Positions 4,150 through 48,914 of a stretch of DNA of 64,000 bases are shown here, in pieces. Where the stretch lies: NCBI GenBank assembly GCA_021613535.1, contig CP075497.1, forward strand, positions 11,656,001 to 11,720,000. The letters are read 5' to 3'. The stretch is from Adineta vaga (lineage: Eukaryota > Animalia > Rotifera). The notes beneath the pieces were generated by a model, which was not told where the DNA came from, ran no database searches, and worked only from the letters and a program-made list of their open reading frames with translations. The position numbers were made by a program, and so were the translations under genes. The number at the start of each line of letters is the position of its first letter. Within the stretch, counting starts at the first letter, position 1.

Positions 4150-4212
4150 AGAACATTAAAATGAATTTTTCAAATTCTATTGATCTAGTCAGATATAATC
4201 TTGATTTTTCAG

Positions 4213-5159: not shown

Positions 5160-5523
5160 ATGAACAAATCGTCAACATATTAAACGTTGAGTGCTCTATT
5201 TATTCTTCCGGTTGTTATCTTATTTACTATATACTCTAGTCGATCTATGTTATCATGCATGTGTGTGTACTCTTTTTTTATACTCAATGATGTTCATGTT
5301 TGCTGTTATCTGAATGACGTTTTCTAAAGATTTTTTTCTTACAATAAAAATATTCAATACATATGTCTAAACTTTGTTCTTATACTATGACCCGTTGGTT
5401 CGGTAATATTTGTTAAGAGAGAAAGGATTGGTTAGCAGATACTTCTTGACTTGATAGTTTGGCTTAGGATTTAACTTTTCGACTTATCTTCTTCAGATTC
5501 AGACGTTTCTTCATTTGTTTATA

Positions 5524-24534: not shown

Positions 24535-24594
24535 AAAATATCTCTCTCTTTGTCACATTCTTCTTAGTTTTGATGTTGTTCTTGTTCTATTTAG

Positions 24595-25550: not shown

Positions 25551-25677
25551 AGTGTCAATTATTGATGCTAATAAATTATCTTTCATTAGATTCGAATCTA
25601 GTTTTTCGTATTTTGTTTCAACGTTTCATACAATAAGAATGAAAATAATTCAACTGTATTTTGTTCTTTTTCAGATC

Positions 25678-25981
25678 ATGAGTGTACAATCTATCAACTT
25701 GAAAAAAAGAGGGAGGTACAAGGATTTATCTGATCCGCGTGGATGGTGACAACGGAATGAGTATGAAAGCTGTACGTGTGATTTTTCCAGAAGCAGTGAC
25801 GATTGGATATTTAAATCATGAGAAGAAGATTGCGTTGTAAGTTAAATGTAATTCATTGATATTTTATTTGGAATTGGTTTTAGGTTACAACTCGATAACA
25901 CGTCGCAAAAGGTTTCTCCACTACCAAATGAACAATAGCAGGATGATATTGAGTATTTAGTGATATTTCCGCGATATTCAA
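25678..25981 (+). pseudogene. Decayed gene with a TDP-43 N-terminal-domain-like segment
   Basis: After a frameshift in an A7 run: IRVDGDNGMSMKAVRVIFPEAVTIGYLN...LQLDNTSQKVSPLPNEQ*QDDIEYLVIFP. This resembles the TDP43_N pattern (DG..L..V...FP.A..L.Y...P...W...Y.V.YP). Confidence 0.45.
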
Positions 25982-27159
25982 GTAAGTGAAAAAGAGTTTT
26001 GCTCTACATATGTAAATATGTATATGAATGTTTTTCTAGGTAAGGAAGTAACAAAGTCATCGTCGAATGAACAAAAATGGTTTGTATTTGATAAAGGTAA
26101 ATAGCTACTTTTCTTTTATTCTGAAGATTTTCATAGATAACACTTTAATCTGAATGTAAAGTTGTAGAATATATTTCAAGTGAACTATCATTTCCCTGCT
26201 AAGACATAAACAGGAATGCATCTATGTTTCATTTTGTTGAAATTAATTGAAAAATATAAAGTTAATAGTATAAGAATGATTGTCGTTGATCGATGATTGT
26301 TCTTGCGACATAACAGAGATCAGAGAGATTTATTTTATGTGGAAAGTATGGACACATCATGTCAAGTTATAATAGAATCGAAATCAAATAAGAAGATTTT
26401 AAATTTCATTGGCAAATTATGTATAATGCAAAAGGTTCATGGAGTAGAAAACATAGAGATCATATGGAACTATTGATCGTTTTGTCGATAGTACAATAAT
26501 ACCCGATGCAATCTAACTCATCTTCACAATATGTAGAAGATAATCGATGAGACTAAACTGTGAAGAAAAGTTACATGAAAATTGAGTTGGATTATCAGAA
26601 GTTATTGTGCAAATGGAAGAACGACCACAACCATTGATTCTCATAGTATATTAGCTTTTTTCGTAGTATATGTATTTGACATTAGAGTTTGTTTTAGATG
26701 TATATATCTGATACTTTCTTCTCAACAATATTCTTGTAATTTAGATATCAATATTTCTCAACGAATTTACAATTGGTGGATGAGATATTTGGATAAAAAT
26801 CTTAAAACTGATTAGAAGCTGATTTTATTTGTATCACAATTACCTGTAAGTATCATGTGATTATCGATCATTTCTATTCAAGTTCTCTTCCATATTTCCT
26901 TTGTGTTCTCAATATATTCTTATACCATACATCGAGCTAGAAGTTGAGAACGTTATTAGTAAGCGAGTCCTCACCACAAAACAATTAGCGAGAGCAATTC
27001 ATAAACAGAATTTTATCCAATGTATATTCATCAGTGTATTCGAAAATTTCTTATTGATTTTTAGTTTTTCTTCAAAGACTGAACAAGAACCATGTATTGA
27101 AATATGTATGACATTCATTAAGCTGAACATGATCATTTTAAAGTTACAGTTTATGTTGA

Positions 27160-27393
27160 TGAACTTCACCTAATTAATCCACATAATCATTCAAATCATG
27201 AACTTTATTCTTCGATTCGTTAGTAACAAATGAACTTATATTAACATCAACACATCGTGCAATGAACAATTCATCTCATTCGATTGAAAATAATCAAGTT
27301 TATTTTGAAGAAATTATTGAAAAATATCGAGAAACAATACGAGATCTTGTTCTGCTTAATGAATTAGTTTCACAAAGCTTAACTTTGAAATAA
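27160..27393 (+). pseudogene. EMC2: Second, internally deleted fragment of the EMC2 3' half
   Basis: ttaatccacataatcat, cttatattaacatcaaca and gaaaataatcaa also occur at 24216-24420. Translation LINPHNHSNHELYSSIR*. Confidence 0.75.
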
Positions 27394-27738
27394 AAACTAT
27401 TTTCTCTTACTTCTTGTTTTATTTGGTATTAGAAAAGAAAAAAAGAATAGGTGAACATAAATTCTTTATTTTAGATAGTGAAAATAGAATTGTAAAATAA
27501 ATATAAAATATTACTAAATGAATTTGCTAAAGTTCATGGACAAATAATAGTTCTTAAGAAAACTGTTATTGATGAACAAATAAAATTTCAACTATTTCAA
27601 GTAACATTTTTTCTTCTAATAAATCATCTTCTTACATTTTCTTTTGTTTTTTCCTAGGAAGATATCAGTCATAAGGGTGAGGGTGAGTGATTAACACAAT
27701 ACCCACACTCTTTTTATTCTATTTGGTTTTGTATTTAG

Positions 27739-28090
27739 ATTTTTTATAATGCGAGAACAATTGCTGCACTTGAACAAGAAAAAGAACATTGGCGTTTAGG
27801 ATATCAATTATTAAAAGTAAAATTTGAGAAAATGCGTGATGGACATTCCAAACAAATCGAAGAGTTAAAAGAGAAAACAGTAATAACAACAAATGAACAA
27901 ATAGATGGACTTATTTCAACTTCACCACCAATAGTGAGTATTTCTATAGAAAAATAGAAATATACGAAAGGAAATTCTCTTTTTTTTTGTTTAGTCAACA
28001 GTTAATCTTCATGAGATTCTCGAACAAGTTTTGATCCACGAAGTCAACGTGAAAGCATCATAAAACAATATTATTCACAAAAAATTCTTG
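27739..28090 (+). pseudogene. PPP1R21: PPP1R21 (KLRAQ1/CCDC128) internal gene fragment
   Basis: IAALEQEKEHWRLGYQLLKVKFEK and QRESIIKQYYSQKI resemble PPP1R21 LEQEKEHWMLEAQLAKIKLEK and REDLIKNHYMARI. One intron is retained; the rest of the gene is absent. Confidence 0.7.
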
Positions 28091-31000
28091 ATGGCGTGGG
28101 AGTGAATGAATCGAATGAGACAGTCACCCACATCGTTAAGTTAATTGAAAAAGATTTAGGGGTGCAACAAATCTTGTTGAAAATTTGAATTTAAGATTTG
28201 AGAATTGGATTTGGATCGAAAATAGTAATGAAATTATGGTTAATGTGAAAGATGTTTACCTCTCTGTGCAAACTTCTTAGTTCTTTCAAAACGATGGAAT
28301 CATTTTTGTGAATTTATGTTAATTTTCTATGAGAAAGTTTCATCAGAACTCGAACTCTTTTTAGATTTATTACTAAATTTGATGTTTAGCTTCTGGTGTC
28401 TATTGATTATCTTATTCACCTAAGTTGAGCCGATTTGACTCATTTAATATCAGAGTAGCATAACTTACAGACATCTGATATCCAAATCATTGGATTTGGT
28501 GCACCTCTGAGAATATTCATTCTACTTTCTTATAATGATAAAGAAAATTATGATAACGATTTGTATTAAAATTTATTTATTCGTAATGTGTCGTTGTATC
28601 GAAATGTTTCATATTAAATAGATGTTTCCATTTTCTTTCTTTTTATAATATAATTCAAAGATTTTGCTACCTAGAATCGGAACCGAAACCACGGTCCCGA
28701 TTCGCTTCCGGGTAACATTTTTTTCCTTGGATACAAACAAAATATTCATATTTATTACGACAAAATTTTTTTCATAAAACGAGTGAGTTTCATAGTGCAT
28801 AGACATGTTATATTTCCCACTTTTAGAATTAATGATGAAACGCATCGATCTGCCAGTCTACGAATCAATCACACGACTCTTTTTCATCACGTCACGGCTC
28901 ATATGATGATTAGAACAAAATTAATATTGATCATTGTATTCTGATGTATCATTTTCAAGAGCTACGATGTTCATCATTTTTTTTTAGGTGTAATCAGTCA
29001 TCCATATCATACGATGTTCATTCTTTTTCGTACGAATAGTCAAAATGGTGAATATATTTTGTAAAATCTTTCACTCATATAGTAAGTTGTTGAAAAGGTA
29101 TTTTCTATAAAAATGAGAAATGAATTATTTAGTGAGGGTCAATGTTATAAAAAAAAAGTTTGATGGTAGATATGCTTGATTGAACACGTAGTTTGGAGGA
29201 ACGAGAATATTTTATGCGTAATCAAATATAATGTTTTTTTTTTCAACTATTTGTAGACAAATTTTATAATGTATTTGACGAGAATAGTTTTTTTCGTATT
29301 GATTATTGATTCATTGGCAACAGATATTGATAATACTACTGTAGCTGATGAAAAAGATGATGAAATTGATACTGTTACAGCAAATTATAATCTGACTAAA
29401 TTAGCAGCAATATTATTTAATCAAGATTCAAATATAACTTGTTAAAACCATTCGATTTTCTATGAAGAATATATGACAATCATTGTATTTTGTTAATAAC
29501 AGTAAAAGAATGAAATATTTGTATGAATTATTGCTGCACATGGTTGAAATCATTCATTTTCTATTGATCCATTTTCATAATAATTATAAAAACAAATCAT
29601 ATATTCAAAATATAGTAGTCAAACAAACATTTGAACCTTTAATTCGTTCACTTTCTATCTTACAATGAGATAAGTCATTCATACAAATGATATTTTACGC
29701 AGTTAGATAAAATATTTGAATAAAAATTTTGTAAAAATTATTCAATATGTTCATCATTATAAATATGAAATTGATTAAATCTAAAACCAGTAAATCTAGT
29801 GAATATTTGAACAAAGTGATACCGATACTTTTCCTTGTTGTCATGGCTCTGTGAATTATTCAGATATCTTCTAGTGATTTATGATTTTGAAACATAAATA
29901 ATCTTCCGATAAGATATACAAAATATTTGAAAATACATATTGCCGTTAGAATTATTCATATTTCTTGTTATCAATGGATATTATGCTTTCAATCAAGATT
30001 CTTATATGAAGAACTCTAATTGTTGATTAGATATTTCTTGGTTTTAATTGTTCATTTTCTTTATAATATATATAACATACACTTCGATATAAAACTTCAT
30101 TGACGTATACAGTCAATAGTTTAATAAATCGATTTTTGAATCTATTCATTTTCCTTATGATCTTTATACGTATCATCATATGAGAATATCATCGATCATA
30201 ATAAAACCGATTGTTGATTAGTTGCATTATGGTCGTATGAAATATTCAGTTAACACATGATCATCGAAAAATTTGCTGTGTAGATCACTTCACGTAAACA
30301 TCAATTGAATTTTTGAATGGAAATTTGGTAGAAATCATTCATTATTGCTTTGTACATAAAATATTGAATATGAGTTTAAGTTTAGATGTAAAGAAACCAA
30401 ATATTTGACTGAACATTTTCTAGATGTTATTCATTTATGCTGTCATTAACTTCTATATCATTTTAAAGGTAATAATGAAATACATCCTGGAGTTAATTGG
30501 TGAAGTACTTGGTAAGATCTGTTCATATTTTTTGTACTGAACAACTATCGTAGTGGGTCGATGTTTATAGAGAAAAGATGCATCTAATAGTTGATTAAGA
30601 ATATATTAGAACTAGTTCAACTTCATAATAATTAATAAGTGATTTGCTTTCGAGAAACAAAGCTAGATAAAGACTGAAATAAATGAACACTTACATTATA
30701 TAAATTATTCATTTCTCATATCATCATTGAATACACAAACTTTTACAAATATTCGAGAAAAATTCAAAAAATACTGAGATGAAAACTTCATATTTTCATT
30801 TATTCATATTCCGTATAATCATCTGACATTCAATATTTCAAAGAAATGATTAAGCATTAGGTAAAATAATTGATCAAAATTCTAATACAAACTATTCAAT
30901 TATCTCATTATCTACATTCATTAACTATTTCTTCATATGTATCTACCAAAAAAATAACATAGTGAAACAAAATTTTATATGTTTAAACCATTCAAATACC

Positions 31001-31227
31001 TTCAAACATTCTACTGATAATCTATTTCAATGATTCTTTTAAATAACAACATGAATATTTAAACAAAATCCTAAATCAGATCCGTATGTAAATCTTTAAC
31101 AGAGATTAACAAATTTATATTTTCTTTTATATATAGAAAATCGAATCCATAAACATTAACAAAATTATTTCTTAGTTCTTTTTTTTTACAAAAACATATC
31201 TATAATCAAACCAAAAATGAAACATCA

Positions 31228-31659
31228 TTAATCTGTTTGTTGTTCATCTTTGCTTGTTGTTTTATTCTTTCCATGCGCTTGTTGCCAAAGTGCATTTCTC
31301 ATTAATCTTGTTGTTGCTTGTTTATCAATTTTCGATGCTGTTTGTCGATCAACAACTGATTTTAATTTATCCATATAAGATTTTACACGATCTAACTCAT
31401 TTTTCAATTGCGTTTGTTTAGGATCAACACCACGCGTTCGTAAATAAGCCCACATTAATGAATTTAATGTATATGTAGCTGTTATATCAAATCGTGCTTG
31501 ATCAAGTGGTGTTAAACTTTCATGTAATGTTGTATATGAAACTGAATCAAGACGAGATAAAAAGGTTTCTAATTCATTTAAAGAACTTTCAAGTTGAGTT
31601 GCGCGAGCATTGAAATCATTTTCAACTTCTGGATCAGGTTGATTAGGTTTTGTTGTCAT
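31228..31659 (-). CDS. C1D: Nuclear exosome cofactor C1D/Rrp47
   Basis: LTPLDQARFDITATYTLNSLMWAYLRTRGVDP, KNELDRVKSYM, RLMRNALW. Confidence 0.93.
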   Translation of the reverse strand: MTTKPNQPDPEVENDFNARATQLESSLNELETFLSRLDSVSYTTLHESLTPLDQARFDITATYTLNSLMWAYLRTRGVDPKQTQLKNELDRVKSYMDKLKSVVDRQTASKIDKQATTRLMRNALWQQAHGKNKTTSKDEQQTD

Positions 31660-31789
31660 TTGTAAGATCTTATGAAAATCTGAAATAAAAAACAAACAAA
31701 CAAACAAAAAATAGATCCCAAATCAAAACAATAGCTTCCGTTTTTAAAAGAAAGTTGAATAAAACAACGATAACAAATAAAGTCATTCA

Positions 31790-34700
31790 CTAGTTTCGTC
31801 CTCGTCCACGACCACGACCTCCTCGTGAAGGACCTCTTCCTCGACTGCTTCCACCTCGACCTCGACCACGACCACGACCACCACCTCTTCCGCGACCTTG
31901 GCCACGACCACCTCCTTGTCCACCACGACTATAACTTGGTCGATTTTGCATATTTGTTATATAAGTTACTGTTTTTTGAATTGTATCCATAAAATATTCA
32001 TGACAAAGTATACACGCAGATGTTAAATTCGTTAGATCTGCATTCTTTTCCTATAAAAATCAATCTTCTCATCAATCATTTAAATTCTCCTTTTCTCTTA
32101 CCTTATTAAATTCTACATTCATCAATGCTGTGTCACATCGATTACAAAATTCTCCATCTTTCATCGTAATCTTTTGAATAGCTTCAGGTAATGACAAAAC
32201 AAACGGACATCTATATCAATAATTTCCATGAAAAAAGACCCAACCCATTTCATTCAAAAAGTACATACTTATTACAAGCAACACGATATTTCGGCATTGA
32301 TGTGACATCTAATACAAACATACCTTGTTTACAAATGTAACAAGTACAAATTCCATTATGTCCAAGAGAATATCGACATGTTGGATGTGTACATTCATTA
32401 CAGCCAGAATTTTTACGCATATCATCAAATGGTGGATTATTATAACAATAAGGACATAATGAAAAACTCTAAATGAATTAAATTTGAAAGGAAAATTTAA
32501 TAAAATCAAATTACTTTTCCATTATTATTAGCAGCGTATTGAACAAGTTCAAATTCATCTAATGGACATCGAAGTTCTTTGAAGGATTTAATTAAACCAT
32601 TTTGTGGAAGATTATAAGTTACTTTACATATTTCACAATGTAAACGACTTGGTCGAGATTCAATTAATTTCATATAACGACGACATTTTCCACATCTAGA
32701 ATATAATTCAAATGATTTGTTTCAAAAAAGAAACTAATCTTGAAGATTTTTTTATTCTACTTGGAAAATGGTTTGCCACTAGCAGCTAATGATGAAAATG
32801 ACACTTCAAAAAGTGCATCCATTCCTAGAATATGTTGAACAAAATAATGAAATTTTTGTTCAAATATTCGAATAACATGTGCCACAACTTGTTGATAATT
32901 CACCCGACCCATAGCAATCTAATCAAACAAAACTTGATTCACTTTCACTAATTCAAAACAATCAAACAAACTTCATTCAATTCCGTTTCGACAGATGATC
33001 TCATATGTGGTAAAGATAATTCTGGATCAATCTAATTCACCAATGACATGTTGAATATTTTCGATGAAACGTTTTTTCCAACTTACTTTTTGATAACCAT
33101 GTACAAGTACAATACCTAGAGATGTTGGAATTAAACGTCGTCCATTATCAACTTTGACATAATTTCTTTCACAAATATTATTAATATGTACTGGAATACT
33201 TGCATCCGTTCCAATGCCATGTTTTTCCATTAAAGAAATCAATTCACTTTCGGTTAAATAATCCGGTGCTGATGTATGTCGTTCATCTAATTTTACATCT
33301 TCTATTGTAAAAATTTCATTGATAGTAAATGTTGGAATAGGATCATCATCAGAAACACGTTTCCAAGACATAATCGCTGTAAAACCAGGTTCAATAACAT
33401 TCTTTCCTGTCAAGGAAAATGTTTCATTGGCTCCTTCGAATAGAACCGTTTTTTCTTCATAAATACAATCTGGACTAACCTAAAATTCAATTGAAAGAAG
33501 AAACAAAACGTTTTTATCAAAAGATTAAATATTATACTGTAGCAATGAAATGACGACAAACATAATCGTATAAACGCCAATAATCACCGCCACCAACGGC
33601 TGCTGGACTTGCTGCTTTGACAGGTGTAATGGGAGGATGGTCGCCAACATCTTTTCCACGTTTTGCTGAAGTATATTGTCCTTCGGATAGAAGACTTTTG
33701 ATATGACCTTGCCAATCAGCACCCGAACAATTTGACAATTCACGAAGAACACCTCTAAAACAGAAAAGCTTAATCATCGAGTGCAGATAGTTCGTATCGA
33801 AAAGTTCACTTTAGATCAGCATTATCAGCATATTGTGTTGTTTCTGTACGTGGATAACTTATAAAACCTGATGTATAAAGACGTTCAGCAATTTGCATAG
33901 CATGGTGAGGACTCATTCCTAATAGAAAAGGAATATTTCGTTTGTTTTTGGAATGAGAAATCATATGAATATTAATCTTACCAAGACCGGCACTAGCTAC
34001 TTTAAGTAAATCAACAGTATTCAATGCATTTGGACGACCTTTGTGTTTCTTTTCTGTTTTAACTGAAAGAACTCTAAAGAAAATCGAAGAACATCATCGT
34101 CTCATATTAAATATTAGTTCAATTTTAATTTACCGAACTTTATTTGCTGTTTTAATGTTATTGAGAAAAAAATATGCGATTTCTTTATCAAATAAATGAC
34201 CACGATCCCAATATAGTTTCAATGTTTTTTCATTCGTATGTTTTATCTACAAAAACATACACAAACAAACAAATCATAGGTAGATATATAAATTTACTTC
34301 AACAGTTAATAACCAATAAGGTTCGGATTGAAAGGATTGTATTTTATCATAACGATCAACACAAAAACCAAGTGTTGGTGTTTGACATGGTCCATACGAT
34401 ATACAACTACTATCTAAATCACCATATTTTCCCTAGAATAAACATAAAAATGAAAAGAGAAATAAATAATTATGATTAATCCATACTTGAAAATATCGAG
34501 TTTGAAAACGTGTAAATGCACAACCAATACGTAAATCTAATTCTTGTCGAGCTTCAACTGATAATGACTGATTCTTATCTGGATAGCCAAGATTATTAAA
34601 TGCATGACGAATATCTTTATCAGTAATTGAACTAAATTTCGCTCGAAGAATTTTCGCCTATATTAAAAACAAAACAATAATTGATGAAAAATTTCATTCT

Positions 34701-35195
34701 CAAACACACATTTTGATTAATTGATGATTGAATACAATCAATAACTTCGAAACAAATATTTTCACCTTCTTTATCACAATCCAACCATAGAATGATCACA
34801 TCAGCACCTCGAGCTTCTTTTTCAAGAAAATTTGGCATTCGATGATTTGGTGATGCTTCTTTTTTCAATGTTTCACCAGCAAATAATTCAGCCTAGGAAA
34901 TGATTCGATCGAATATCTTCTCTTCAGAGATAAACAAAAAAGAAAACGATTTGAGTCTTACTGGATCAACTTTATCCCAATTATTATAACGCGGAACGAA
35001 ATCAATACCAAAAACATGTCCAGCTACTGATGTCATACGATAACGTGCGGATGAATTGGATTGATATTTTCCTGTCCATTCATGTATACTACAAACATTA
35101 TTAAAACCTTTTCGTGATGATAATTGACCATTGGAAAGAATTTGTGAAATTGATAAAGCCAATGAAGGCTTTTCTGCGACCATAAAGATAATCAT
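31790..35195 (-). CDS. TOP3B: DNA/RNA topoisomerase III beta
   Basis: MVAEKPS (TOPRIM), [24 protein letters not shown] (catalytic Tyr), [17 protein letters not shown], a Cys-rich zinc region and a C-terminal RGG tail. Confidence 0.97.
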
Positions 35196-35416
35196 CTTTT
35201 TATTTTTTTCTTCTTTCTTTTGAAAAGAAAAGATATCTATTTGAATTAAAAAGAAAATCTATAAAGATCGATTCGCATGTTTTCTCACTCCTTGTCTGTT
35301 GCTTTTTTTTTAAAAACACAACAATGGCATCATTTTAACAAAAAAAAGGAAAAGAAAAGAAAAGAAAAAAGTTGATGTTCTTGGCTAAATCTTCGATATA
35401 TTTGGTTAATTGAGTT

Positions 35417-36263
35417 TTACATATTCTTAATAATATCTTCGATTTCTTCTTTTTTAAATAAACGATAACCTTTGGCATTGACAGTTGCCATTTCAACATT
35501 AGTTGCATTTAATTTTTCTTCCATAACTTGTTTAAGAATTGTTAAAACATGTTTACATGCTTCTTGTAATTTCATTGATTTATGATAAACATCTTGAAGT
35601 GTTTGATCAGCACCTTCACTACCTGAACCAATGGCTTTGGCATCATATTCTGTATAAGTGCCTGATGGATCAAGATGAAAGAGATGAGGACCATTTTCAT
35701 CCCAACCAGCAAACAAAAGTGCAACACCAAATGGACGTGATATCGGTGCAACTTCATCAGAATCATCACTGAATGCTAATGCCATATTTGATACGGATTG
35801 AGTGATGGATTCAATGGTCATTTGTTCATTATGTGTGAACCAATGATTTTGAGCTTCGACACGAGCTTTATCAATTAAAGTTTTTGCATCAGCAATTAAA
35901 CCGGACATCGCACAACCACAGCTAAGGATACATTTGAAGAGTAAGAATACAAAAAAAAAACGATTGTCGAACAGATTAACTTACTGAACATCAACTTCAA
36001 CAATCTTTTCAATACTACGTGGTTCGATAAGAACGGATGTAATACGTTTTTCTGTTGCTAAGACAACGCCTAAATCATATTCATTCGTAATCAGACTTTT
36101 CAACAGATGAATATTCTATCAAATACGAACCTTCTGATGTCATGATTCCAATAGCTGTTGTACCGAATTTAATTGCTTCGATAGCATATTCAACTTGAAA
36201 AAGACGACCTTCAGGTGAAAATGTATTAACACCTCGATCATATTCACTTCTTGTCATAAACAT
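35417..36263 (-). CDS. PSMA5: Proteasome subunit alpha type-5
   Basis: [47 protein letters not shown]. Two introns. Confidence 0.97.
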
Positions 36264-36583
36264 TTTGGAACGATTTTCTTTGTTTCACTCGGGACGTTTA
36301 AAACACGTGTGAAAATGATCTAGAATACCAACAAAAACATATATCTTTTTTTATTTTGATCTACAATCGACAAAAAAAGAATCCATTTTTTCTCATAGAT
36401 GATCGATATATATATATATATGTAAATTATGTACAAACAAAAAAGAGAAGTCAAAAAGAACCGAATAACTACATACGATGGTAATAATAATAATAATAGT
36501 GATGATGGTAGTGAGAAGGAGAATGAAGATCAGTTTGCTAAAAGAAAAGCAAAGACGGGTACGCAAAGCAATTCGATGGTTCA

Positions 36584-38739
36584 TCATTGATGAACTTTAT
36601 TGGGTAATTTCGGTACAGGTGGTAAATTAACCCAATTTACATTCACACTGGATATACGTAAACGAAGCTTAGGTGCAAATACACGCATATCACCAAATTT
36701 CAAACCGTGTTGTTCTTCGTATTGAGAAATAATACGTGCATATTTTTTCGATGGATCTTCCTGTTGTTGTGATTGTTGCTGGTGATGTTGAGAAGGTGGT
36801 CGACTAAATAAAATAGATGTATATGAGTACACAAAACGATCGAGATCAATATCTTACCCTCGTCGAGCAGGTACTCGTATTGTTTGTTGAAAATCTTCTT
36901 CTTGTTGTTGCTGTTGTTGTTGTAGCTGTTGTTGTTGTTGTGTATCTTGATTAACATCATATTCTTCATCATCTTCATATTTTCTATATCGATTTTGTTT
37001 TGCATATTGTGATTGTCGATTATTGCCATTAGATGAATAATCATCATCATTTGGACGAATACGTTTTCTCATTTGTTGTTGATCATCGTCTTCATCGTCA
37101 TTTTCATAATATCGTTTCGAATTCTGATAATTTGATGAACGTTTATAAGGTTGAGTAATGGTTGTATTACGAAATTGTAAACGATTTTCTTCATCAATGA
37201 TTTCCTCACCGCCAGGACCTTCGATATGTTCTGTTGTTAAACCAGCTTGTTTCTACAAAGAAAAGAACATATTGTTCTTAGAAATCTGATTCATCTGAAT
37301 TTAGAGTATCGAATTCTCTTGTATATCAATGATAGCTATGTTTGATCAGTACGACTTACCTTATCAGGTGAAACAATATCAATTTGATTTTTCGTTGATC
37401 CATCTGTGTTTGTTGGAAGTTTGGAATTATTTGATGATGAATCAATAGTTGCATCTTGTAAGAGCATTTTTTTTGATTCTGGCAATTGTTCATAGAAACT
37501 TGGTAACATATTACCAATATAGGATGATTTAATTGTTCCTCCTGTTGGTTTAACAGGAGGTGCAGCTGGAGGAGGTGGTGGTAATTTCACTGGTGATGAC
37601 ATTGTTTTTGTACTTGTTGTTTGAACATTCATTTCATCATCATCATCTTCGTCAAGTTCTTGATCTTCTAACATATCCATTTCTGTCACAGTTGGTGCGA
37701 TGTCATCATCAAGATCTTCATCAGCAATTGATGAACGAAGATGATTTGCTCGAAAACGTTGTACAGCAATACGAGCAGCTGTACGCCGTGGTGGTTTATT
37801 TCGACGTTGAATTGGTTGATGAAGATCACCTTCAAGACTATCCTCATCTTCTTCGTCCTCATCAAAATCATCACCTGAATTGAAATCATTTGAATGACGA
37901 AATGTCACACGTTTCGACGAGGCACTAGGTGGATATTCTGAACGAGGATAAAGACGTGGTGGAGGAGGAATATTACGACGTATCTGATAATTATTACCAC
38001 GTGTACCACTATATGATGATGGAATGCCACGACGAGGAATCATTGTCGATGGTTGACGATAAGATGAAGTTGCTGATGGAATCACTGGTCGATTAACCAT
38101 TCCACCACGAGATCGACGTTCCTCTTCAAACGATGGTCGACTTGTATAACCACCTCGCATCTAAATATGAAAATCAAAAGATTACATGCTTTACGGTATT
38201 AAGATCAAAGAAGTTTACAGTAGGAGGTTTAATTCGTCGATCTACATGTCCAATAGCTAATGGATATTTCACTGGTGTATCATCATCAGCAAAATTATAA
38301 TGTCGATAATTATTAACTAAAGGAGAAGTCGAATGTGAAGGTATGACTGCAAGGGGAGCACGTTCACGTCCATTAATCGTTCGACGTGTATTCATTCTCA
38401 TAAAAACTTCATAGGGATCATAATCATCATTATTTTGTTGAGTTGTATTATTTAAATCTATTGCATCAACTTCAAGACAAAGATCAACATTAAGACCAGC
38501 ATATGGATCATAACCATCATCCGTTGTTGACATATATTCAAATGCTGCATAAGATGTTGATGTTGGTTCTACTTCACATTCAAAATTAGCTTCATCTTTT
38601 CGTTCTAAAATACATATTGATTAGTACTTCTATTTTTACTTGAAAAATTCTTACCGCGAATTTCTGCATCTCGTTTTAATTTCCATCCAAGTAAAGTAAG
38701 ACCTTCGGTAAGTGTAGGCTGATGATGTATAGTAGTCAT
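36584..38739 (-). CDS. Low-complexity, probably disordered protein (RG-rich, acidic, poly-P, poly-Q), unknown
   Basis: Five exons join in frame through GT-AG introns, from MTTIHHQP... to ...LPNKVHQ*. No recognisable domain. Confidence 0.7.
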
Positions 38740-38846
38740 CTAGAAAAACAAAACAAAACAAAAACACAAAATTAAACTTTCTCTTTAAAATAAAGAGATA
38801 ACAACGATAGATGATTGCTGAAGATTTTTTTTTCTTTAAATTAAAA

Positions 38847-41800
38847 CTATTCATCAGTACTATCATTTTTTTTATGGCGAGAAGAATTTTTCGTTTTTCG
38901 TGCTTCCATTTGACCTAGTTTTTTGTAAACGACTTTTTTCAATTGTTTATGTTTTTGTAAACGTTTTATGTCTTGAGCTTTTTGTTGTTTTTTATGTTGA
39001 GCATAGCGTGTTTCTTGAGTTTTCTGTTTCGTTTTCAAACGATCTTTGTAAACTGTTGTGAACATTTTCATAATATCAGCCATCTAAAATACGATTTCAT
39101 CTTTGATTTAAAAAGCAAAAAAATATGAGATTATCCTAGTACCTTTTTCTCTTCCGGTTCAAGAATAACAGCAACACGTTGTTTTTCTTGAATTGGATCT
39201 TTAATTGTTGTTGTTTCTGTTGATTTTGGTTTTAGATGGAATGGTAGATCGCTTTGAAGTTGAGTAGGAATTTGTAATGGACGAAAAATACGCTCTCTTC
39301 TTTCGATTGGTTTATAAAGAGAATCAACATTCGGTTCATTCCTAATGTTTTTATCACGTTTAAGTTGACCAAGAGATCTGAAAATTGACTCGTCTTCTAT
39401 GATAATCCTTTTGAATTTGAACAAATCTTACCGAAGTCCTTGCCATTGATCTTTCTGTTCCGTAGTCATTAAAAGATTTGTAACTGGTGTATAAAATCTC
39501 GGTACTTGTAATGGAAGCCATGCTCGAAGAAAGATAATATCTTAAGAAGGAAAATCAATTTGAAAGATTTCAATTCCTGATTGTTCTTACCACTGAGAAG
39601 AATTTTATCTTCAAATGTCGCACGAAATGCACCTGGATGTTCTTTACAAATCTTTTTTATTTGCCCACGTATTCCACTGACAGTTCGAATTGATGCACCT
39701 TGAAATTTCGCTACTTCCAATGAAGTATTGAACATTCCCTAGATAAACACGAAGTATATTAAAAAGAATTAGTTTATTCATAAGAGATTTTACTTTAATA
39801 AACGCTGTTTTCTTAAAGATTTTATAAGGTGTACCAATTAATTTTAATTTCTTCACAATTTTTGTTGATTTATCTAAATCAACCACAACACCTGTTGCTG
39901 TCACTCGAAAATCGGTCTAAACAACAGAACATCATTGATTGACAAATTTCAACAATCAACTTACTCGTCCAGCTATTTGTTGAACAGCAATAAATCCCGT
40001 ATTTTGTGGAGTAATAGGTCCTATAAACAAAAATATAATCAAATATTTGCTTCTAGACAAATTTCATACCATAAAATAGTGCATGACAATACATATGTTG
40101 TGGTGTATATTTTAATAATCGATGTCTCATATTATGATCTTGCATGAAATAATATGGAATTGTTTGAAAACGTCGCCAACCCAATGAAACAATCAATGGA
40201 TCTTTGCTTTTCAAGATTTTCTTATGCCAACGATGTTTTTTCAAACGAACTTGAACATAACCTGTATGAGATTCTGTAACAGGCATTCCACCAAGAATAG
40301 TTATATAACGTGGATCGAAATTATTAACAAATTCACATGGAATTTGTGTTAATTCACAACGAACATACATTCCAGGACGATAACCTTCGTATTGAACACG
40401 AATATCATCGGGCATATTTTCAAATTCTGATCGATTTAACTAGAAAAACGAAAGATAAATTGAATGATCGAGAAAGAAATATCAAGTTATACATACTTTA
40501 GTTTGAATGTCCACTTCTTTTTTTAATTCATCAAGATATTTGGAATCTGGATCTTTTGATTGATCAAATTCGGCATCAAATGTAGATTTTAATTTCGCTT
40601 TTTTATTTCGAAGTTTAGCTTCTTCCGAATCATCTGCTTTTTTATCATCATCGTCATCGTCATCATCTAAATAACACTTTTATAAAGATATTTCATCAAA
40701 ATATTGGATTTTTACCATCGAAATCCATCTGATTGCCTTCACCACGACTCTTTTCACCTGTTTCAAGATCTTCAAAATCACCAAATACATCTTCTGAAAA
40801 AACAAACCTATGAAATGATCTTCCAATCAAACAATAAACAAACATACCATCATCATCATCATTCATTTCATCATCTTCTGCAAGTAAATTTGCTGCATCT
40901 TTATCTTTTTCCCATTTTCCTGTTACAAAACAATCACGAATCAAATCACAAACCTAAAATTAAAAAGAAAATCGATTCTAATCATTCTCTTTTCTCCTTT
41001 TATTCATCATACATCTTCTAAGTTCCAATCATGTTTGTCATTTTGATTATTTAATGTATAATCTTCTTGATCATTCACATTGATTTTCTTTCGATGAGAT
41101 ATATGAAATAATCCACCAACTTCGGAGTGTTTGTTTTTAGAATTAATTTCATCAGTAGATACATCTTCATTTCCTTTTTCTATAAATCAAAGAAAAGATT
41201 CTTTTCAAATAACAAATTTCATTATCCGTACCATAGACAAGTTTCGTCCAATTAATAGCTTTATTTGGAACATAACTGATTGAAAATTTCTTGGATATAT
41301 TTTCTTTCCATGATGAACCTAAGAAATGTATAAGTGAACAATTCGTTCGTATACAAGGATAAATCTAGATAATCAAGCTACTTACCAAATTCGCCTTGTT
41401 CGGGTTCCTAAAATAAACACAAAAGATGATTATCCTGTAGTTGTCTTACATTCTGTACTTACTTGGTCATCATCATTATTATCATCATCTTCTTCTTCTT
41501 CCTCTTCTTCGTTGCTTTCATTATCGTCGTCGTCGTCCTCCTCCTCCTCTTCTTCGTTATCATCCTCGTCTTCTACTTCAGAAATATCTTCATCTTCTGT
41601 TTCAAATTTCATTTTTCTTCGTTCTGTATCTTTACTACAAACAAAATCATGAATATATATATTTGAAAAAAATGCAACTAATCTTCTCATACTCGTCTTC
41701 AGCTGTAACTGGTTCGCTATCAGCAAATAATTTCAATTGACTTGATGCTACTTTGTCTTCAATTGTTTGTCGTGTTGATAAAATATTTGCTACATATTCA

Positions 41801-43281
41801 CTGATTGGTCTTGTCTAAAACAATTCATTAAATTTAAATGCTTTTCAATATATTTGAATTTACTTTTTCATTATTATTCGTCGGTCGATGTGAATGTGAA
41901 CCACCTAATTCAATATATACAGCATCTTTATCATAAACAATTCCACCAACACCAGAAAATGGTGCATACATAAGTCGTTCTTTTTCATTTAAAACTCGTC
42001 GAGCTTTTTTCGTTTTCGTCGATCGATCACCTGGTAATCCACATGGATCCGGTAAAGCTGATATATTCGTCAGTTTGTAATCACCACAACCTAAAAAACC
42101 ATTTAATCTTCACAATAACTCGAAACTAAAGTCGTTTACCTGGAATATGAATTGGTGTATCAGATTTGATTGGACATCCACGTACATAACCATACAAACA
42201 TACAGTACGACTACATAATGGATCTGTTCGAATTAATTCGGGTTCTGTTAAATCTTCCATTCTGAAAAGAGATTTTTATGAGAAGAAGAAGTGGAAGAAA
42301 TGAAAGATTTACCGATCAGCAACAACGAATGGATGTGTTGTTTTCCATGTTGATGGTTTAAATTTCATGACAGAAATAAATCTTGCTAGATTATGAACAT
42401 CCCGTTGAATATATTCGCCATTTTTCATTCCGGACATGAGAAATAATTTAGCACCCTGATAAATCTCAGTCCAAAATCGATGCTTCAATTGTGTTTTTCG
42501 TTTATTCAATTGTTTATTCATTTTTTTATATAAATCCATATGAGTTAAAACACCCATAATTCTTGGTAAACCATAAATTTGTGCAATATTTAAAAACTCA
42601 AATGTTTCCATTTCAAAACCAAATTTCGCATCGATTAAAAGCAAAACCTATTCAATTCAATAATATTTTCCCATGCATCAAAACAATGAAACCTTACTAA
42701 ATCAGCTATTTTTGCCACATCAATCATTGAATTAATATCATTTCGACATTCAATAAAAGTAATACGACGTTTTCGTCCTTAACAAACGAACAATCATAAA
42801 TTAAAATTCATTTTGTAAAACTTCCACAAACCTGAAACGATCGTAACTGGTCCTCGAATATCTGTTAATTTTTGTCGTGTAAAATTTTTAATTAAACATT
42901 TCATTAATAAACTTTTTCCAACTTTTCCTGGTCCAACTAATGCAACGACAACAGGCGGTGGCTCAAGTGGTGTTCGATCAACTTCAGGTAGATGTATTCG
43001 TTTTTCTTTGATATCTTGTGTTCTGATTTAAATTAAAAAAAATCAAAAGTTTCTGAAAAGAAAAATGAATCTTATCATTACCGTCGAAATACTTGTTGAG
43101 CTTTGATAGGATTTTGTATACTAAATGCTTTTGGATTTCGTCGCTTTGCTTCTTCTAAAGTTGTTGCTTTCGTCGACGATGGTTTTTCTCCTCCTACTTC
43201 TTCTTCTTGTTTCTTTTTCTTCCGTCGTTCTGCTTTCACACCTGTAGTTGCTTTTCGAAATGCTTTCTGTTTTTTCTCCAT
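38847..43281 (-). CDS. BMS1: Ribosome biogenesis GTPase BMS1
   Basis: [17 protein letters not shown]-loop, [70 protein letters not shown]. Confidence 0.97.
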
Positions 43282-43305
43282 CTGAAAGAAAAATCAAAAG
43301 AAAAA

Positions 43306-44138
43306 TTATTCAGATTTGCGCATCGATTGAACAATAGAAGGGTCAAAAGGTTGTCCTTTAAATGGAGAGCCCTCTGCATTCCATGCTTGTTTCATAATAT
43401 CCTGATATTTCTAAAGACAAAGAAATCAAAGAAATTTCATTAAAAACTAAATATAAATTTGTTTCACTTGTTCTTCGGATGTCGGTAAACCCATAGCTTT
43501 TTGTCTTTGATCATACATCATCTGATGAATTTTCATCTGTTCCTCTTGATTTAAATCTTCCATCGATTTTTCAGGTTGAATATGTTTTAAACTGATCTTT
43601 TTTTCATCAATAAGAAAATTTTCCCACCAACGTTCCAGTGCTTTTTCCATGGAAATCTAAATATGAAAGAAGTTATCTTAGAAGATTTTCAAGAATTTAA
43701 TTTACATGAATATGTTCACCAGGAACTAAACTCCAGGTTGATTCCTCGGAACGTATTGCCCATGGTAAATCACTATCAATGATTGTTCGAATACCAGTTG
43801 ATTCAATTAAATCAATTTTAATGTGTTGTTTCGAGAAAGTTACTTTTACTTCTTTGCCTTTCTTAATCGTTTTTGGAATCTAAATTATGAAAAATTTCTT
43901 CTATGAGAATCTGAGGAATTGAAAGTTTGATTTACTTTAACTCGAACATCGATATCGTTGATTGTTTGTGTCCAAGAATAAAGATCACGTTCAGCACCAT
44001 TGTATGTTTCAGGACGAGATTGAAAATCTTTTTGTTCTCTAAATAGATAGAAAATGCAATGCAAACAGATCATAATTCTGCTTACAATGCTTCAATTGGA
44101 TCAGCAACATTAGAATTTTCAACAGGATTTGAAGTCAT
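43306..44138 (-). CDS. NUDCD3: NudC domain-containing protein 3 (CS/p23 plus NudC-C), lacking the N-terminal domain
   Basis: YNGAERDLYSWTQT, ESTWSLVPGE, MMYDQRQKAMGLPTSEEQ and AWNAEGSPFKGQPFDP. An in-frame TAA lies two codons upstream of the ATG. Confidence 0.88.
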
Positions 44139-45600
44139 AATTTAAATAAGAATTGATTCACCTAAAAAATTTCAGAAAATGGATGAATATATTCGTATAA
44201 TGGTGAGTCTTTGTTTATCGAATTCTTTGCCCTATTCTGATTGATTGTAATTTATTGACCAATCAGAATACGGAAATGTACCTCCTTGTCTTCAATATAA
44301 ATTTTATAAATCAAGATCGAATATTATGCAAACAGCGACGGATATCTTTGAAAATCATTCCGAAAAAATATTTTTGTAATGAGAAATATGAATAGATTAT
44401 TAATACGACATCTATTCTATGAATGATGTATTTTAGATGTCGCTAATTTTCTGTAAAACATGAAATGAAAGATTTTTGTCAAGTTTAATTTTGTTCGATG
44501 CTCGTTTTTGATTAATTTTATTATTATTAAGATTTCATAATTACACTACAATCAAATATTCGATGTGAGAGATATTACATACAGATTAATGCATTGTGAA
44601 CTTCTTCTTAAAAAAGCTTCGACATACAATTCATATGAATAAACTTTTTCGTTTCTAATACCATTGAATGATCTTAAGCTCGATCGTTCATTATTATGAA
44701 AAAAGATATCAATGTCAAAACCCTCATTACATTTATTGATTATTGTCATAGTAACATTATTTTTATTTAAGAACTATTTTTAAGAAACATGTTTCTAATC
44801 ATTAAATATCACATTTTTTAAATGAGAAGAAAAAATAATTTTCAGCTTTATTGAATAGTCAATAGTAATCGTATTTTATTTTTACTATTCTTTATCAAAT
44901 AAAGGGTCATCGCACGGTCACATCGTCGTTTTTCGTTCTTTTCGTTTATTACTAAACAACAAGTAGCACGTATACTTTTCATTTACTCATCAATGCACAT
45001 GCTTTGTATACTACGAGTAAGTAATGTTGAACTAATGTGTGAGATATAAATACACTTTTCTTCGCTCTACTTGTTTAAATGACTCCAGAAAGTAATCCTG
45101 TTAAATCAGTCATGAATGATAATTATAGAAACAACATAAATTACTAGTCGATGTTCTATTATTAAGAGTATAAATAATATTTTAAATTAAATTGATAAAA
45201 GTAAGATTTAAAAAGACATGAAGTATAATTTAGTTTTATTCATGAGAACTACGAAAAAATTGATTTATTTTTTCTTTCTTTCTTTCTCAATTATAAACTC
45301 ATAGTCGTTAAGAAGAAGAAGAAGAAGAAGAAGACAGGTAAGGTGTCTTTTTTTGCGTTTCTTCTCTCCAGTACAAATTTATAAACTATTCGTCCATGAA
45401 AGAATACAAAAGTTGAGTAGAGAGAAAGAAATAATGAACGAACATAACTTATTTAACGTCGTCAAACAGAACGAAAGAAATCTTCATATACATCAACTTC
45501 ATTCCTTGTTATACTATTCGTATAAAGTATTGTCTGTCATTCTTGAACTTATATCTATCTATTCTTATTCTAGATCAATTAGTGGAATAACAACGTTAGA

Positions 45601-48600
45601 ATGACTTCAAAAAATGCTCAACTTGCTCTGTATAAATCCTTTGCAGATGCATATAAGAAGGGTCATCCTGGAATGACAAAATATGTAATTGACTACTTAA
45701 ATATATCTTCAAATCATATCGAGTATTTTATTTTATAGGCATGTCATTACAATACTGAAATGGAATGGAAAAAAATTAAAACTAATGAACAATTAATTAA
45801 AACTGAAATAGAAAAATATCTAGAACTTGCTAAACAACCGGATAAAAAAGAAAATAACAATGAAGTAACTGCTAATAATACTTCAAAAGAAGAAAAATCA
45901 AGTACAATAAATGAACGAAAACGAACATTATCTTCGGATGATGAACATGAACCCTATGAAGTAGAACTCGAAGATAATGTTATTACCCCTGTTGAACCAA
46001 CATTTACTAAACGTGATTCAATAAAACATACGGAGTTCAATGATCCTAATAAACCATGGGTGGCTCTTTCACTCGCAAGAGCTCATGCACGAGCCGAAGC
46101 GCGTAATGCTAAAGTTCAAGCTCGACGTCTTGCTAGTGAAAATCGAATCAAAACTCCTGTACAAGAAGGTGTTATACAAGAAATCAAAGAGATTTCGGAA
46201 CGTATTGCTAGTTTAGTTCAAGTGAAAAATATGGGTTTATCAACAACGGATTCGAATCAAACATTAAAAAAATTACTTCAACAAAAAAAAGAACGTACTG
46301 CTGAATTAAGTCGTCTACAGTCGAAACAACGTTCATCAGCACGTTATCGTCAACGAAAGAAACGTTGTGTAGAATCCATTTGTGCTGCTGATCCGGAAGT
46401 AGCTGCTGAACTTTTAAAACTTTATAAACCTGCGACACTTCGCGTGCAAATCGATAATATTTGTCCTGATCTAATTCAAACTATTGAAGAAATTGCTCGA
46501 ATTGCTGGTGCAACTGATACCAATCCTCGATTAATTAATGTCGCACCATGTACATCATTAGATGATTTGAGAGTCAAAATAAAAGAACGTGGTTACGAAA
46601 TTCGACGATCATCATCATTTTATCGGTAAAGAAAAAGAAGATCAACAGCAATTTATTGATTTTTCTTTGTTTTTAGTTTGATTCCAACAGGAATTTTTAG
46701 TGAAGATGGAAAACGACATGTCACTTCGGAACTTGTTCGTCTTCGAAAACTCCAAGGAATTGAACAAACAAAACATGAAGGTAATACAATTTTGTACAAA
46801 TCGATTATTTCTCGATACAAATTGATTATTTAGATTGCCATTTTATTGTTGCAACTTTACAACATATTAAAGATTTAGCTGGAACATTTGGAAATGAATG
46901 TGTCTTTTATTTTATTCAAGATCGAAAGGCTTCTGTTCGAATTGGTCGACCATCAGCAAGAGGACATTCACCTTTCATTATGCATTTAGATTATCAAACA
47001 AGTACAGCAGATTCAACACCTCTACCACCCAGTGTTCCTTATCAATTAAAACCGACGTAGGTTCTATTTTTTTTAACATTAACTTTTGATTTCATTCATT
47101 CATTTCTAGAGTCTATGCTTCATGTGTTATTGATGATTCTGGTCTCGTTGGCTTTGCCGGTCCAACATATATATCAATACGATCAGCAAAACATGATCGA
47201 TTTAGTACTGAAAGTGATGATGTGGATTTCGATTGTATACTTAAATTAAAAGAATTTGAAAAAACTGCTCGAAATCATCTGGGAACGATCAAACCAATTA
47301 TAATTATGGGTGTTGATAATCTTGAATGGAATGATTATACACGTCTTCCATCAACTCTTACTTCAGCCATAAATAAATTTAAAAAATATAATCTTGATGC
47401 TCTTTTTATCATAACAGAAGCACCAGGTCAAACAGCATTCAATGTTGTTGAACGACGTTTAGCATCGTTGGCAAAAGATTTAACTGGTTTAGTTTTACCA
47501 TATGATTATTTTGGTACACATTTGAATATTAGTGGTGTAACGATTGATGCTGAACTAGAAAAAATTAATTTTAAAAAAACCGGTGAAGTCCTCGGAGAAG
47601 TCTGGAGTATGGATATGATTGATCAACATCCGGTTGTTGCAGAATATATTGATCCACCAGAATCGGTTGATGATACACTTCGATTAATTGATAGTCAATT
47701 TACATTAGATGCAATTATTGATGAGTAAGTTGTAATTGGATCTATTTCACAATTTACTAAGATATATTATTGATATGAATAGAATTTGTGATGAAGAAGA
47801 AGAAACACCACTTCATCTTCGTATTGCTAGTGGTCGATCTGCTCCATCTAGACATTTAGTTCTTGATACTCCTGCAAAACCAATTGATACTACTATCGAT
47901 GAGTAAGTTTTCTTTTTTTGATTTCTCATTTTCTACATGATTGATTATTTTAGATATTGGTGTGCAACACATGTATTTCAAACTCAATACTCCATACAAA
48001 TAATTCGTTGTACAAAACCAGAATGTTGTGGTCCATGGCGTTCCAATTATATTCAAGTATTTCCACATCGTTTTCTTCCACCACCTGTTCCCTTCGATCG
48101 TTCATCAGATGGTGTTCGTTTAGCTGAACTTGAATCTTCAATTGCTACAACAAATCCCATCTCACCTTATTACGGCACTTTATTTCAACGTATACAATTT
48201 CATGGTATCGTTATGCAAGGAACCAATAATTTACTTTTACCGTTTGATTCTTATTGTCCATCTGTACAAACGAAACTTCATTCTCGAGTATGTTCAATCT
48301 GTAAACAATATATTCCATCTGCTACTCGTTTACGTAATCATTACAAAGTTCATCAACAACGATATGCTTTGAATTCAATTGATTATAAATTTCATAAAGA
48401 TGAAGAATTAATTGATGAACCAGATCCAATTGAACCAATAACAATTCTTCCATGTCAAACTAATCCAAGTCTCAATGGTGTTTCTCTTTTTTCTGATATG
48501 GCCGAATGGCTTAAATCAGATTTCGAAGTTGATCCTGTAGTTGAATCCAAACCCAAATCATCAGCTACAATTGCAAATGCAATGATTCGAAGAGAAAGAC

Positions 48601-48914
48601 AATTACAAGAAGCTGCAGCAGCAGCAATTGGTATAAGTCCAAATGACATCGGAAAACTAACATCAGTTGAACCTGTAGCAACAATATCTGTTGATAATGC
48701 ATTAACAACATCAACAACAACAAATGAAATAATATCTTTGGATGAAATTAAAACTGAATGTGAAATAGTTGATACGAGTACAGATAATACAAATGTTATT
48801 GATGCAATGGAACATTTAGTGGTTACAGATGATAGAACAGATTCAACTAGTGATCAAAATGATAACTTTTTGAATCAATATGATGATCTCAGTGATCTTA
48901 TTGATCAAATTTAG
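45601..48914 (+). CDS. Zator/TP36-type DDE transposase-derived protein with a C2H2 finger, 7 exons
   Basis: YRLIP...EDGKRHV, FIQDRKASVRIG, VYAS...GPTYISIRSAKHD, KPIIIMGVD, APGQTAFNVVERRLA, LVLPYDYFGTHL and CSICKQY...LRNHYKVH. Six GT-AG introns keep the frame open. Confidence 0.75.

Follow-up and report, generated by a model that had tools for sequence, protein, structure and literature searches.

Six closely spaced genes on one strand

A 64,000-nucleotide stretch of the genome of the bdelloid rotifer Adineta vaga (contig CP075497.1 of assembly GCA_021613535.1, positions 11,656,001 to 11,720,000; called the window below) carries six consecutive genes on the minus strand, separated from stop codon to start codon by gaps of 24, 107, 320, 221 and 130 nucleotides. 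The original prediction for this locus held that the six genes form a single polycistronic unit, whose transcript is resolved into individual messages by spliced leader (SL) trans-splicing at an acceptor AG ahead of each downstream gene (G at 43282, 38740, 36320, 35237 and 31680). All of these gap lengths and AG positions agree with the sequence. The analysis described here makes an SL-operon architecture reasonably probable, arranged either as two adjacent three-gene units or as one operon with an internal promoter. The features on which the argument depends are listed below, with the five gaps designated J1 through J5.

44263-44204, minus strand: candidate gene 1 promoter region, with ATTGG (an inverted CCAAT) at 44263-44259 and an 18-nucleotide block at 44221-44204
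44138-43306, minus strand: gene 1, CS-domain, NudC-family-like, five exons; ATG at 44138, stop at 43308-43306
43305-43282, minus strand: J1, the 24-nucleotide gap between gene 1 and BMS1; AG at 43283-43282 abuts the BMS1 ATG
43281-38847, minus strand: gene 2, ribosome biogenesis GTPase BMS1; ATG at 43281, stop at 38849-38847
38846-38740, minus strand: J2, the 107-nucleotide gap between BMS1 and the orphan; acceptor AG (G at 38740) abuts the orphan ATG
38739-36584, minus strand: gene 3, an orphan of 628 amino acids, five exons; ATG at 38739, stop at 36586-36584
36583-36264, minus strand: J3, the 320-nucleotide gap between the orphan and PSMA5; AG at 36321-36320; probable unit boundary
36263-35417, minus strand: gene 4, proteasome subunit alpha type-5 (PSMA5); ATG at 36263, stop at 35419-35417
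35416-35196, minus strand: J4, the 221-nucleotide gap between PSMA5 and TOP3B; AG at 35238-35237
35195-31790, minus strand: gene 5, DNA topoisomerase 3-beta (TOP3B), with a C-terminal RGG tail; ATG at 35195, stop at 31792-31790
31789-31660, minus strand: J5, the 130-nucleotide gap between TOP3B and C1D; AG at 31681-31680, 20 nucleotides 5′ of the ATG
31659-31228, minus strand: gene 6, C1D (Sas10/Utp3/C1D family), single exon, the last gene of the array; ATG at 31659, stop at 31230-31228

Gene identities were evaluated one exon at a time against Pfam, and searches of solved structures were added for PSMA5 and TOP3B. The names first assigned to four of the genes hold: BMS1 exons match RIBIOP_C and GTP_EFTU; PSMA5 matches Proteasome and has alpha type-5 subunits as its best solved-structure matches (E 5e-72); TOP3B matches Topoisom_bac and finds TOP3B as its best solved structure (E 4.5e-47, versus 5e-16 for TOP3A); and C1D matches PF04000 (Sas10/C1D). 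A Zn_ribbon_TOP3B domain is also recorded for TOP3B of relatives, and C1D has 30 bdelloid homologs with 66-91% identity. Both gene content and closest relatives are bdelloid, the latter being Adineta steineri, A. ricciae, Rotaria sordida and Didymodactylos. The name NUDCD3, which had been given to gene 1, is supported as far as a CS-domain protein, with the Pfam CS domain matching the exon at 43700-43879. Gene 3 stands as an orphan: its five joined exons give a clean open frame, no Pfam or Atlas match was found for the protein, and it turned up only among the bdelloid loci and contigs retrieved for this analysis.

Likewise, the earlier description of the complete gap between gene 1 and BMS1 as a splice acceptor holds for the 24-nucleotide sequence tttttcttttgatttttctttcag, which scores 9.8 with the acceptor matrix described below. 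The statement that the gaps contain no consensus donor proved nearly right. Its exceptions are GTATGT at 36476 in J3 and the donor-like hexamer GTGAGA at 35288, which lies about 50 nucleotides ahead of the J4 AG, and neither is kept in relatives.

The window has a G+C content of about 30% and many short GT-AG introns of 47-67 nucleotides. About 1.46 kb of intergenic DNA separates gene 1 from a divergent gene upstream, and no coding open reading frame was seen in 24000-31228, where AT-rich DNA (24-27% G+C) extends for at least 7 kb beyond C1D. The cluster therefore sets itself apart from its flanks by gap size (24-320 nucleotides versus 1.46 kb and at least 7 kb). A search of the haploid A. vaga assembly for a second, homoeologous copy returned none for BMS1 or C1D, and gave one weak match to the CS-domain protein on contig C5.

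Spliced RNA contigs cross the first two junctions

RNA data took the form of assembled contigs from four runs of four studies (X1, X5, X13 and X15), which were compared with positions 38500-44450 (5951 letters, covering J1 and J2). Introns are absent from the contigs of all four runs, and the contigs are therefore judged to be derived from RNA. The introns of gene 1 (44039-44085, 43880-43935, 43657-43705 and 43411-43467) are spliced out, and many GT-AG joints are present in BMS1.

A 2563-nucleotide contig from X1 contains the five exons of gene 1, runs unbroken through 43082-43410, and continues through BMS1 exons down to 40848. The unbroken segment comprises the last exon of gene 1, the 24-nucleotide gap and exon 1 of BMS1. 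The same arrangement with the same unbroken segment is found in X15, and a contig from a third study (X13) crosses J1 without interruption from 43180 to 43410 and includes gene 1 exons. The break in the X13 contig coincides with a polymorphic site at 43179 (A>G relative to the window). J2 is crossed by contigs from X1 (3456 nucleotides) and X15 (2389 nucleotides), both unbroken over 38655-39083, which comprises the last exon of BMS1, the J2 gap and exon 1 of the orphan. RNA that crosses J1 is thus present in three independent studies, and RNA that crosses J2 in two.

The ends of these contigs are also informative. The X1 contig reaches 1864 letters below 38655 and the orphan exons sum to 1802 letters, and therefore this contig ends about 62 nucleotides past the orphan stop codon, near 36522, and short of PSMA5. 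Upstream of gene 1, RNA contigs end at 44163 (X1) and 44169 (X13). A loose end in X5 at 43141 is not SL. Within the J2 gap, contigs from different studies show a TT insertion and a T>G change relative to the window, at 38824 and 38833; these differences, like that at 43179, are strain or allele differences.

Acceptor sites and gene order among bdelloids

A weight matrix for splice acceptors was built from 19 RNA-supported local introns. With this matrix, the acceptors of J2 (9.3) and J5 (13.0), together with that of J1, fall within the top 1-2% of the approximately 2,900 minus-strand AG dinucleotides in the window. The J5 site, ttttttatttcag, is the strongest of the acceptors. On sequence alone the scores of the remaining two sites are unremarkable, since the J3 acceptor scores 5.7 and is outscored by another AG in its own gap, and the J4 acceptor scores 1.5. 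Both AGs are nevertheless kept in relatives.

Loci of relatives were found by anchoring on C1D, on a BMS1 exon and on a gene 1 exon. The gene orders recovered are as follows.

L030 and L031 (R. sordida): gene 1, BMS1 (1107 amino acids), orphan (570 amino acids), PSMA5
L032 (an ENA assembly): gene 1 through TOP3B
L013/L014: orphan, PSMA5, TOP3B, C1D
L007: PSMA5, TOP3B, C1D
L020: BMS1, orphan

The R. sordida BMS1 ortholog is annotated beside the same neighbours, and orthologs of the orphan are present in L030, L032, L013 and L020. Gene order is kept in at least six bdelloid contigs. None of the 19 introns gives a significant orthologous blastn match to any relative, as is expected of saturated sequence, and conservation within the gaps therefore reflects constraint. 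With order conserved and introns saturated, the order of the genes appears to be kept by selection. However, the linkage is not universal. In the more distant assembly GCA_041442895.1, the gene 1 homolog (69% identity) adjoins an opposite-strand INTS8 gene rather than BMS1, and the arrangement therefore covers only part of the tree. The contigs anchored on C1D are all genomic and speak to synteny only. Apart from the SL genes themselves, none of the fetched loci gave an SL match.

The first two gaps are short in every lineage fetched, namely A. vaga, R. sordida, an ENA assembly and a JGI contig, and always end with an AG that directly abuts the ATG. J1 measures 24, 45, 37 and 35 nucleotides in the window, L030, L032 and L033, respectively; the gap sequences cannot be aligned across lineages, and each finishes with a pyrimidine tract plus the abutting AG. 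J2 measures 107, 99, 102 and 88 nucleotides, and its AG is retained directly before the ATG in L030, L032 and L020. At J5, the tract GTTTTTATTTCAG, followed by AT, is retained in L007, L009 and L013, with a near match in L019, and the sequence downstream of the AG varies freely. This combination of a preserved tract and unconstrained sequence past the AG looks as expected for a splice acceptor. At J4, the motif TTTTAATTC[AC]AATAG, followed by AT, is retained in four lineages, and the leader after the AG ranges from 3 to more than 200 nucleotides.

Spliced leader genes and a leader remnant ahead of BMS1

The rotifer SL has been published as GGCTTATTACAACTTACCAAGAG (PMC3795323, Table 1). A search of the whole 100.8-Mb A. 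vaga genome (six contigs) returned 59 copies with at most two mismatches, versus 0 for a reversed control, and the copy that was inspected is followed by the donor GTAAAT. Because SL copies and a GT donor are present, the SL machinery is present, and the capacity for trans-splicing on which the original prediction relied is borne out. All 59 copies are of a single SL type, and no operon-specific second SL was seen in this search. Many of the SL RNA genes are arranged as head-to-head inverted pairs with starts about 154 nucleotides apart, with clusters on contig 5; examples are located at C1:2551160-2551336, C2:8684673-8691979, C5:9.88-9.93 Mb and C5:10.91-10.93 Mb.

A metagenome collection was scanned for a degenerate BMS1 start preceded directly by the last 11 nucleotides of the SL, and one contig was returned. 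This contig (L034; JGI24214J29971_1012241, 3868 nucleotides) is from an environmental bdelloid and carries the complete coding sequences of gene 1 (197 amino acids) and BMS1. It is intronless at 20 or more positions that are occupied by introns in other lineages, and it is therefore taken to be RNA-derived. Its 44-nucleotide gap (606-649) ends with ...cttcgtttt ACTTACCAAGAG directly before the ATG. The 12 nucleotides immediately preceding the BMS1 start codon are exactly the 3′ end of the SL, and the match over the SL length amounts to 16 of 22 positions; the chance of finding 11 SL letters immediately ahead of the start of a BMS1 ortholog is about 4^-11. At its other extremity, L034 ends inside the pyrimidine tract just ahead of the orphan acceptor, which fits a BMS1 message that terminates at the acceptor of the next gene.

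Because the SL letters are internal to L034, the contig must be either a chimera of a precursor and an SL-spliced message, or a genomic relic. On either reading, that lineage had the SL attached directly to its BMS1 ATG, where the original prediction places it. A relic would require that a trans-spliced BMS1 message was reverse-transcribed and recombined into the operon, after which the 5′ half of the SL may have decayed to a pyrimidine tract; the gap DNA itself would then read ...cgttttACTTACCAAGAG directly before the ATG. Such an event, if true, would point to RNA-templated repair or gene conversion having acted in bdelloids, and would give independent proof of SL addition directly at the ATG of the BMS1 message. 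We consider this origin for the 22 SL-like nucleotides unlikely. A genome-wide count in A. vaga of the 3′ 12-mer of the SL not followed by G gave 12 occurrences versus 10 for the control, and the lack of an excess makes the relic reading of L034 less likely.

A probable unit boundary ahead of PSMA5

The J3 gap is distinct from the other junctions in several respects. It is long in four lineages (306-345 nucleotides) and contains a series of conserved elements. A hairpin-like block (TTTGCT...AGCAAA, approximately 36560-36535) lies directly past the orphan stop codon, and an invariant sequence, TGTACATAATTTACATA, occupies 36435-36419. A 65-nucleotide block at 36373-36309 is kept in four lineages, with blastn matches of 62-65 nucleotides at 90-92% identity (L013 and L030). 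Unlike the conservation at J4 and J5, this block spans the AG and runs past it. Within the block, TATAT at 36343-36339 is located 27 nucleotides ahead of the A (36316) of an initiator-like TCATTTT.

This layout resembles that found upstream of gene 1, where the 18-nucleotide block is matched at 18 of 18 positions by blastn at the orthologous place in L032. A TATATT sequence begins at 44191, just downstream of that block, and the RNA contigs end about 25-30 nucleotides beyond, at 44163-44169. These sequence features suggest that the region upstream of gene 1 may function as a promoter. For J3, the gap length, the conserved blocks, the TATA- and initiator-like motifs, the weak acceptor and the end of the X1 contig together favour a putative promoter for PSMA5 within the gap, a reading drawn from motifs and the end of one contig.

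These data bear directly on the possibility that one promoter, located upstream of gene 1, drives all six genes as a single polycistron and that SL addition resolves each of the five junctions. Such an arrangement would be in keeping with the common orientation of the genes and an AG ahead of each start, with the gene order conserved in bdelloids, and with the retention in relatives of even the J3 and J4 AGs. However, the J3 acceptor is beaten by another AG in its gap, conservation in J3 extends to both sides of the AG and includes TATA- and initiator-like motifs, the gap remains 306-345 nucleotides long across lineages, and the X1 contig ends soon after the orphan stop codon and leaves J3 uncrossed. 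For these reasons, we judge a single six-gene polycistron to be improbable.

Conserved elements are also present in two other gaps. J2 carries a conserved candidate hairpin, GTTATCTCTT ... AAGAGA, at approximately 38802-38780, with counterparts at L030:16744, L032:14979, L020:1778 and L034:3809. It forms 6-9 base pairs in isolated segments of about 54 nucleotides in five of five lineages, and appears in the best fold of the whole gap in four of the five. Its loops range from 3 to 19 nucleotides, both sides of the stem are changed at two positions, and the fold z-scores are modest (-0.9 to -2.9). The hairpin includes a GATA-type site, TTATCT. J4 carries a 38-nucleotide non-coding block at 35342-35305 that has 97% identity in L007 (E 6e-14).

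Three ideas regarding such elements were rejected. The J4 block does not qualify as a microRNA or other structured RNA, as its Rfam match (MIR158) is below threshold (E 0.42) and its z-scores are not significant in three of four lineages. The J2 hairpin core, a J3 17-mer and a J4 19-mer do not exceed reversed controls in genome-wide frequency, which eliminates them as general operon signals and indicates that these motifs are locus-specific; they may act at the DNA level as promoters, or at the RNA level in regulation or 3′-end formation. A C/D-box small nucleolar RNA suggested by TGATGA...CTGA past the orphan stop codon is not kept in relatives.

A proposed model: two three-gene units resolved by trans-splicing

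We propose the following model for expression of the array. Transcription of the first unit would start near 44165, under the control of a promoter upstream of gene 1, and would run through BMS1 and the orphan. The precursor would then be split into single-gene messages by formation of the upstream 3′ end and by trans-splicing of the SL (22-23 nucleotides), which would be joined to the AGs at 43282 and 38740, both of which abut start codons. The ...AAGAG end of the SL would provide these messages with a leader and with a purine at position -3. In the second unit, PSMA5 would probably be expressed from its own TATA-type promoter in the 320-nucleotide J3 gap, and TOP3B and C1D would probably be downstream cistrons that are spliced at 35237 and 31680. 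SL addition at each site in A. vaga, the poly(A) sites, the J3 promoter and co-transcription across J4 and J5 are the parts of this model that we infer.

Confidence differs among the junctions. It is very likely that J1 is a true operon junction resolved by SL addition, and the same conclusion is likely for J2, whereas for J5 and J4 the chances are even or slightly better. The single SL-resolved polycistron put forward at the outset thus survives for gene 1, BMS1 and the orphan, where spliced contigs bridge the genes, the AG directly before the ATG is conserved, and an SL remnant is present in L034. It is not supported for all six genes, given the weak acceptor, the conserved TATA/initiator-like block and the X1 contig end at J3. 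Co-transcription of PSMA5, TOP3B and C1D, with resolution by SL addition, is plausible on the basis of their sequence.

Several observations weigh against the proposed architecture. No SL-bearing loose ends at 43282 or 38740 are reported in the four A. vaga contig runs; however, this is not evidence of absence, because assembly tends to drop short tips. The stretch of SL in L034 measures only 12 nucleotides, is located mid-contig, and belongs to the lineage of a relative. A two-gene contig is not proof of a single molecule, and is compatible with overlapping untranslated regions or with a start inside the upstream gene. The locus-specific blocks in J2 through J4 could be ordinary promoters, and the TATA/initiator reading of J3 draws on sequence motifs. 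Finally, the J4 acceptor is weak, and co-transcription across J4 and J5 is a prediction from sequence.

Some of these points, namely the inability of contigs to demonstrate single molecules, the promoter potential of the conserved blocks and the lack of SL in the A. vaga contigs, would equally suit a set of compact but separate genes. Each gene would then have its own promoter in the gap or in the upstream gene, the AGs would be outron acceptors or chance occurrences, and the contigs would bridge overlapping untranslated regions. We nonetheless find this explanation quite doubtful, and more so than a six-gene polycistron, as an acceptor-only gap of 24-45 nucleotides cannot accommodate a promoter, and the AG is held against the ATG even though the gap sequence is free to change. 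Separate genes would also leave the SL remnant on the BMS1 ATG of L034 to be explained, as well as a strict six-gene order that persists despite saturated introns and differing flanking genes among lineages. A stable two-gene message for the CS-domain protein and BMS1, translated by re-initiation past the 24-nucleotide gap and without trans-splicing, would account for the fully spliced two-gene contigs of three A. vaga studies and L034, but is highly improbable, given that the gap is a strong, conserved acceptor and not a known re-initiation signal, that SL-derived letters precede the BMS1 ATG in L034, and that SL trans-splicing is established in bdelloids, with the published SL (PMC3795323) present alongside a donor.

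Comparison with known operon systems

Tunicate operons (Ciona, Oikopleura) and the ‘SL1-type’ operons of Caenorhabditis elegans have no intercistronic spacer or very short gaps, and employ a single SL. The proposed rotifer units resemble these systems in having a single SL and in locating the downstream acceptor where the upstream message must end. The fit extends to the J1 gap of 24-45 nucleotides, to the ending of L034 at the orphan acceptor, and to the housekeeping nature of the genes. They differ in that rotifers belong to another phylum with an unrelated SL, and in that J2 through J5 are 88-345 nucleotides long with locus-specific conserved blocks.

Similarities to the SL2-type operons of C. 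elegans include the co-oriented genes, gaps of about 100 nucleotides (J2 and J5), and an acceptor near the ATG. The J2 stem-loop, which is followed by a U-rich stretch upstream of the acceptor, also recalls the C. elegans Ur element, although we mention this as a lead only. In contrast to SL2-type operons, whose downstream genes use a specialised second SL, a single SL type was found in the rotifer genome search, and the J2 hairpin does not recur across the genome. We know of no operon-specific second SL in rotifers.

A closer parallel in terms of phylogeny is offered by chaetognaths, which are gnathiferan relatives of rotifers. In Paraspadella gotoi, about 18% of genes reside in operons, as defined by gaps of less than 250 bp plus SL evidence (PMC12460157). 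These operons have no operon-specific SL and are enriched for proteasome and protein-metabolism genes (PMC12460157); the array described here likewise includes a proteasome gene, PSMA5, and is found in a genome with a single SL type. Trans-splicing and operons are treated as having evolved independently among lineages, and no rotifer operon is reported in that 2025 genome paper (PMC12460157). According to a methods paper (Wenzel et al., 2021; PMC7986045), neither operons nor polycistronic messages had been reported in rotifers, and we found no report of a rotifer operon in the searchable literature, including after 2021.

A conserved rotifer operon, if true, would extend the small group of animal phyla with operons by one, and would mean that within Gnathifera operons exist in rotifers as well as in chaetognaths. 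According to one hypothesis (Zaslaver 2011, as cited in PMC12460157), operons allow faster recovery from growth arrest. Because bdelloids recover from complete drying, they would be well suited for testing this hypothesis. There would also be a consequence for annotation, as models of bdelloid genomes would have to treat the start sites, untranslated regions and promoters of downstream genes differently.

Additional features of the related loci

The loci of relatives revealed several other features adjacent to the array. In several relatives, a seventh gene is present on the same strand about 100 nucleotides after C1D (L007:4752-5351, L013:7568-8206 and L016:1237-1896). It encodes a cysteine-rich protein of 199-219 amino acids and is absent from the window. 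In L033, which is another contig of the same ENA assembly as L032, there is a second, diverged pair of gene 1 and BMS1 at 3636-5297. The members of this pair are separated by a 35-nucleotide gap that ends with an AG abutting the ATG, and BMS1 is detectable there by its 5′ exons only. A further, lone copy of gene 1 is located 6 kb downstream (L033:9900-10303).

On the other side of the array, the divergent upstream neighbour in the window (47300-48616, plus strand) has a counterpart in R. sordida that likewise lies divergently beside gene 1 (L030:8194-9823), and the two share 60% identity over 443 amino acids. Upstream of gene 1 in L032 is a different gene on the same strand, which matches 51365-52366 of the window.

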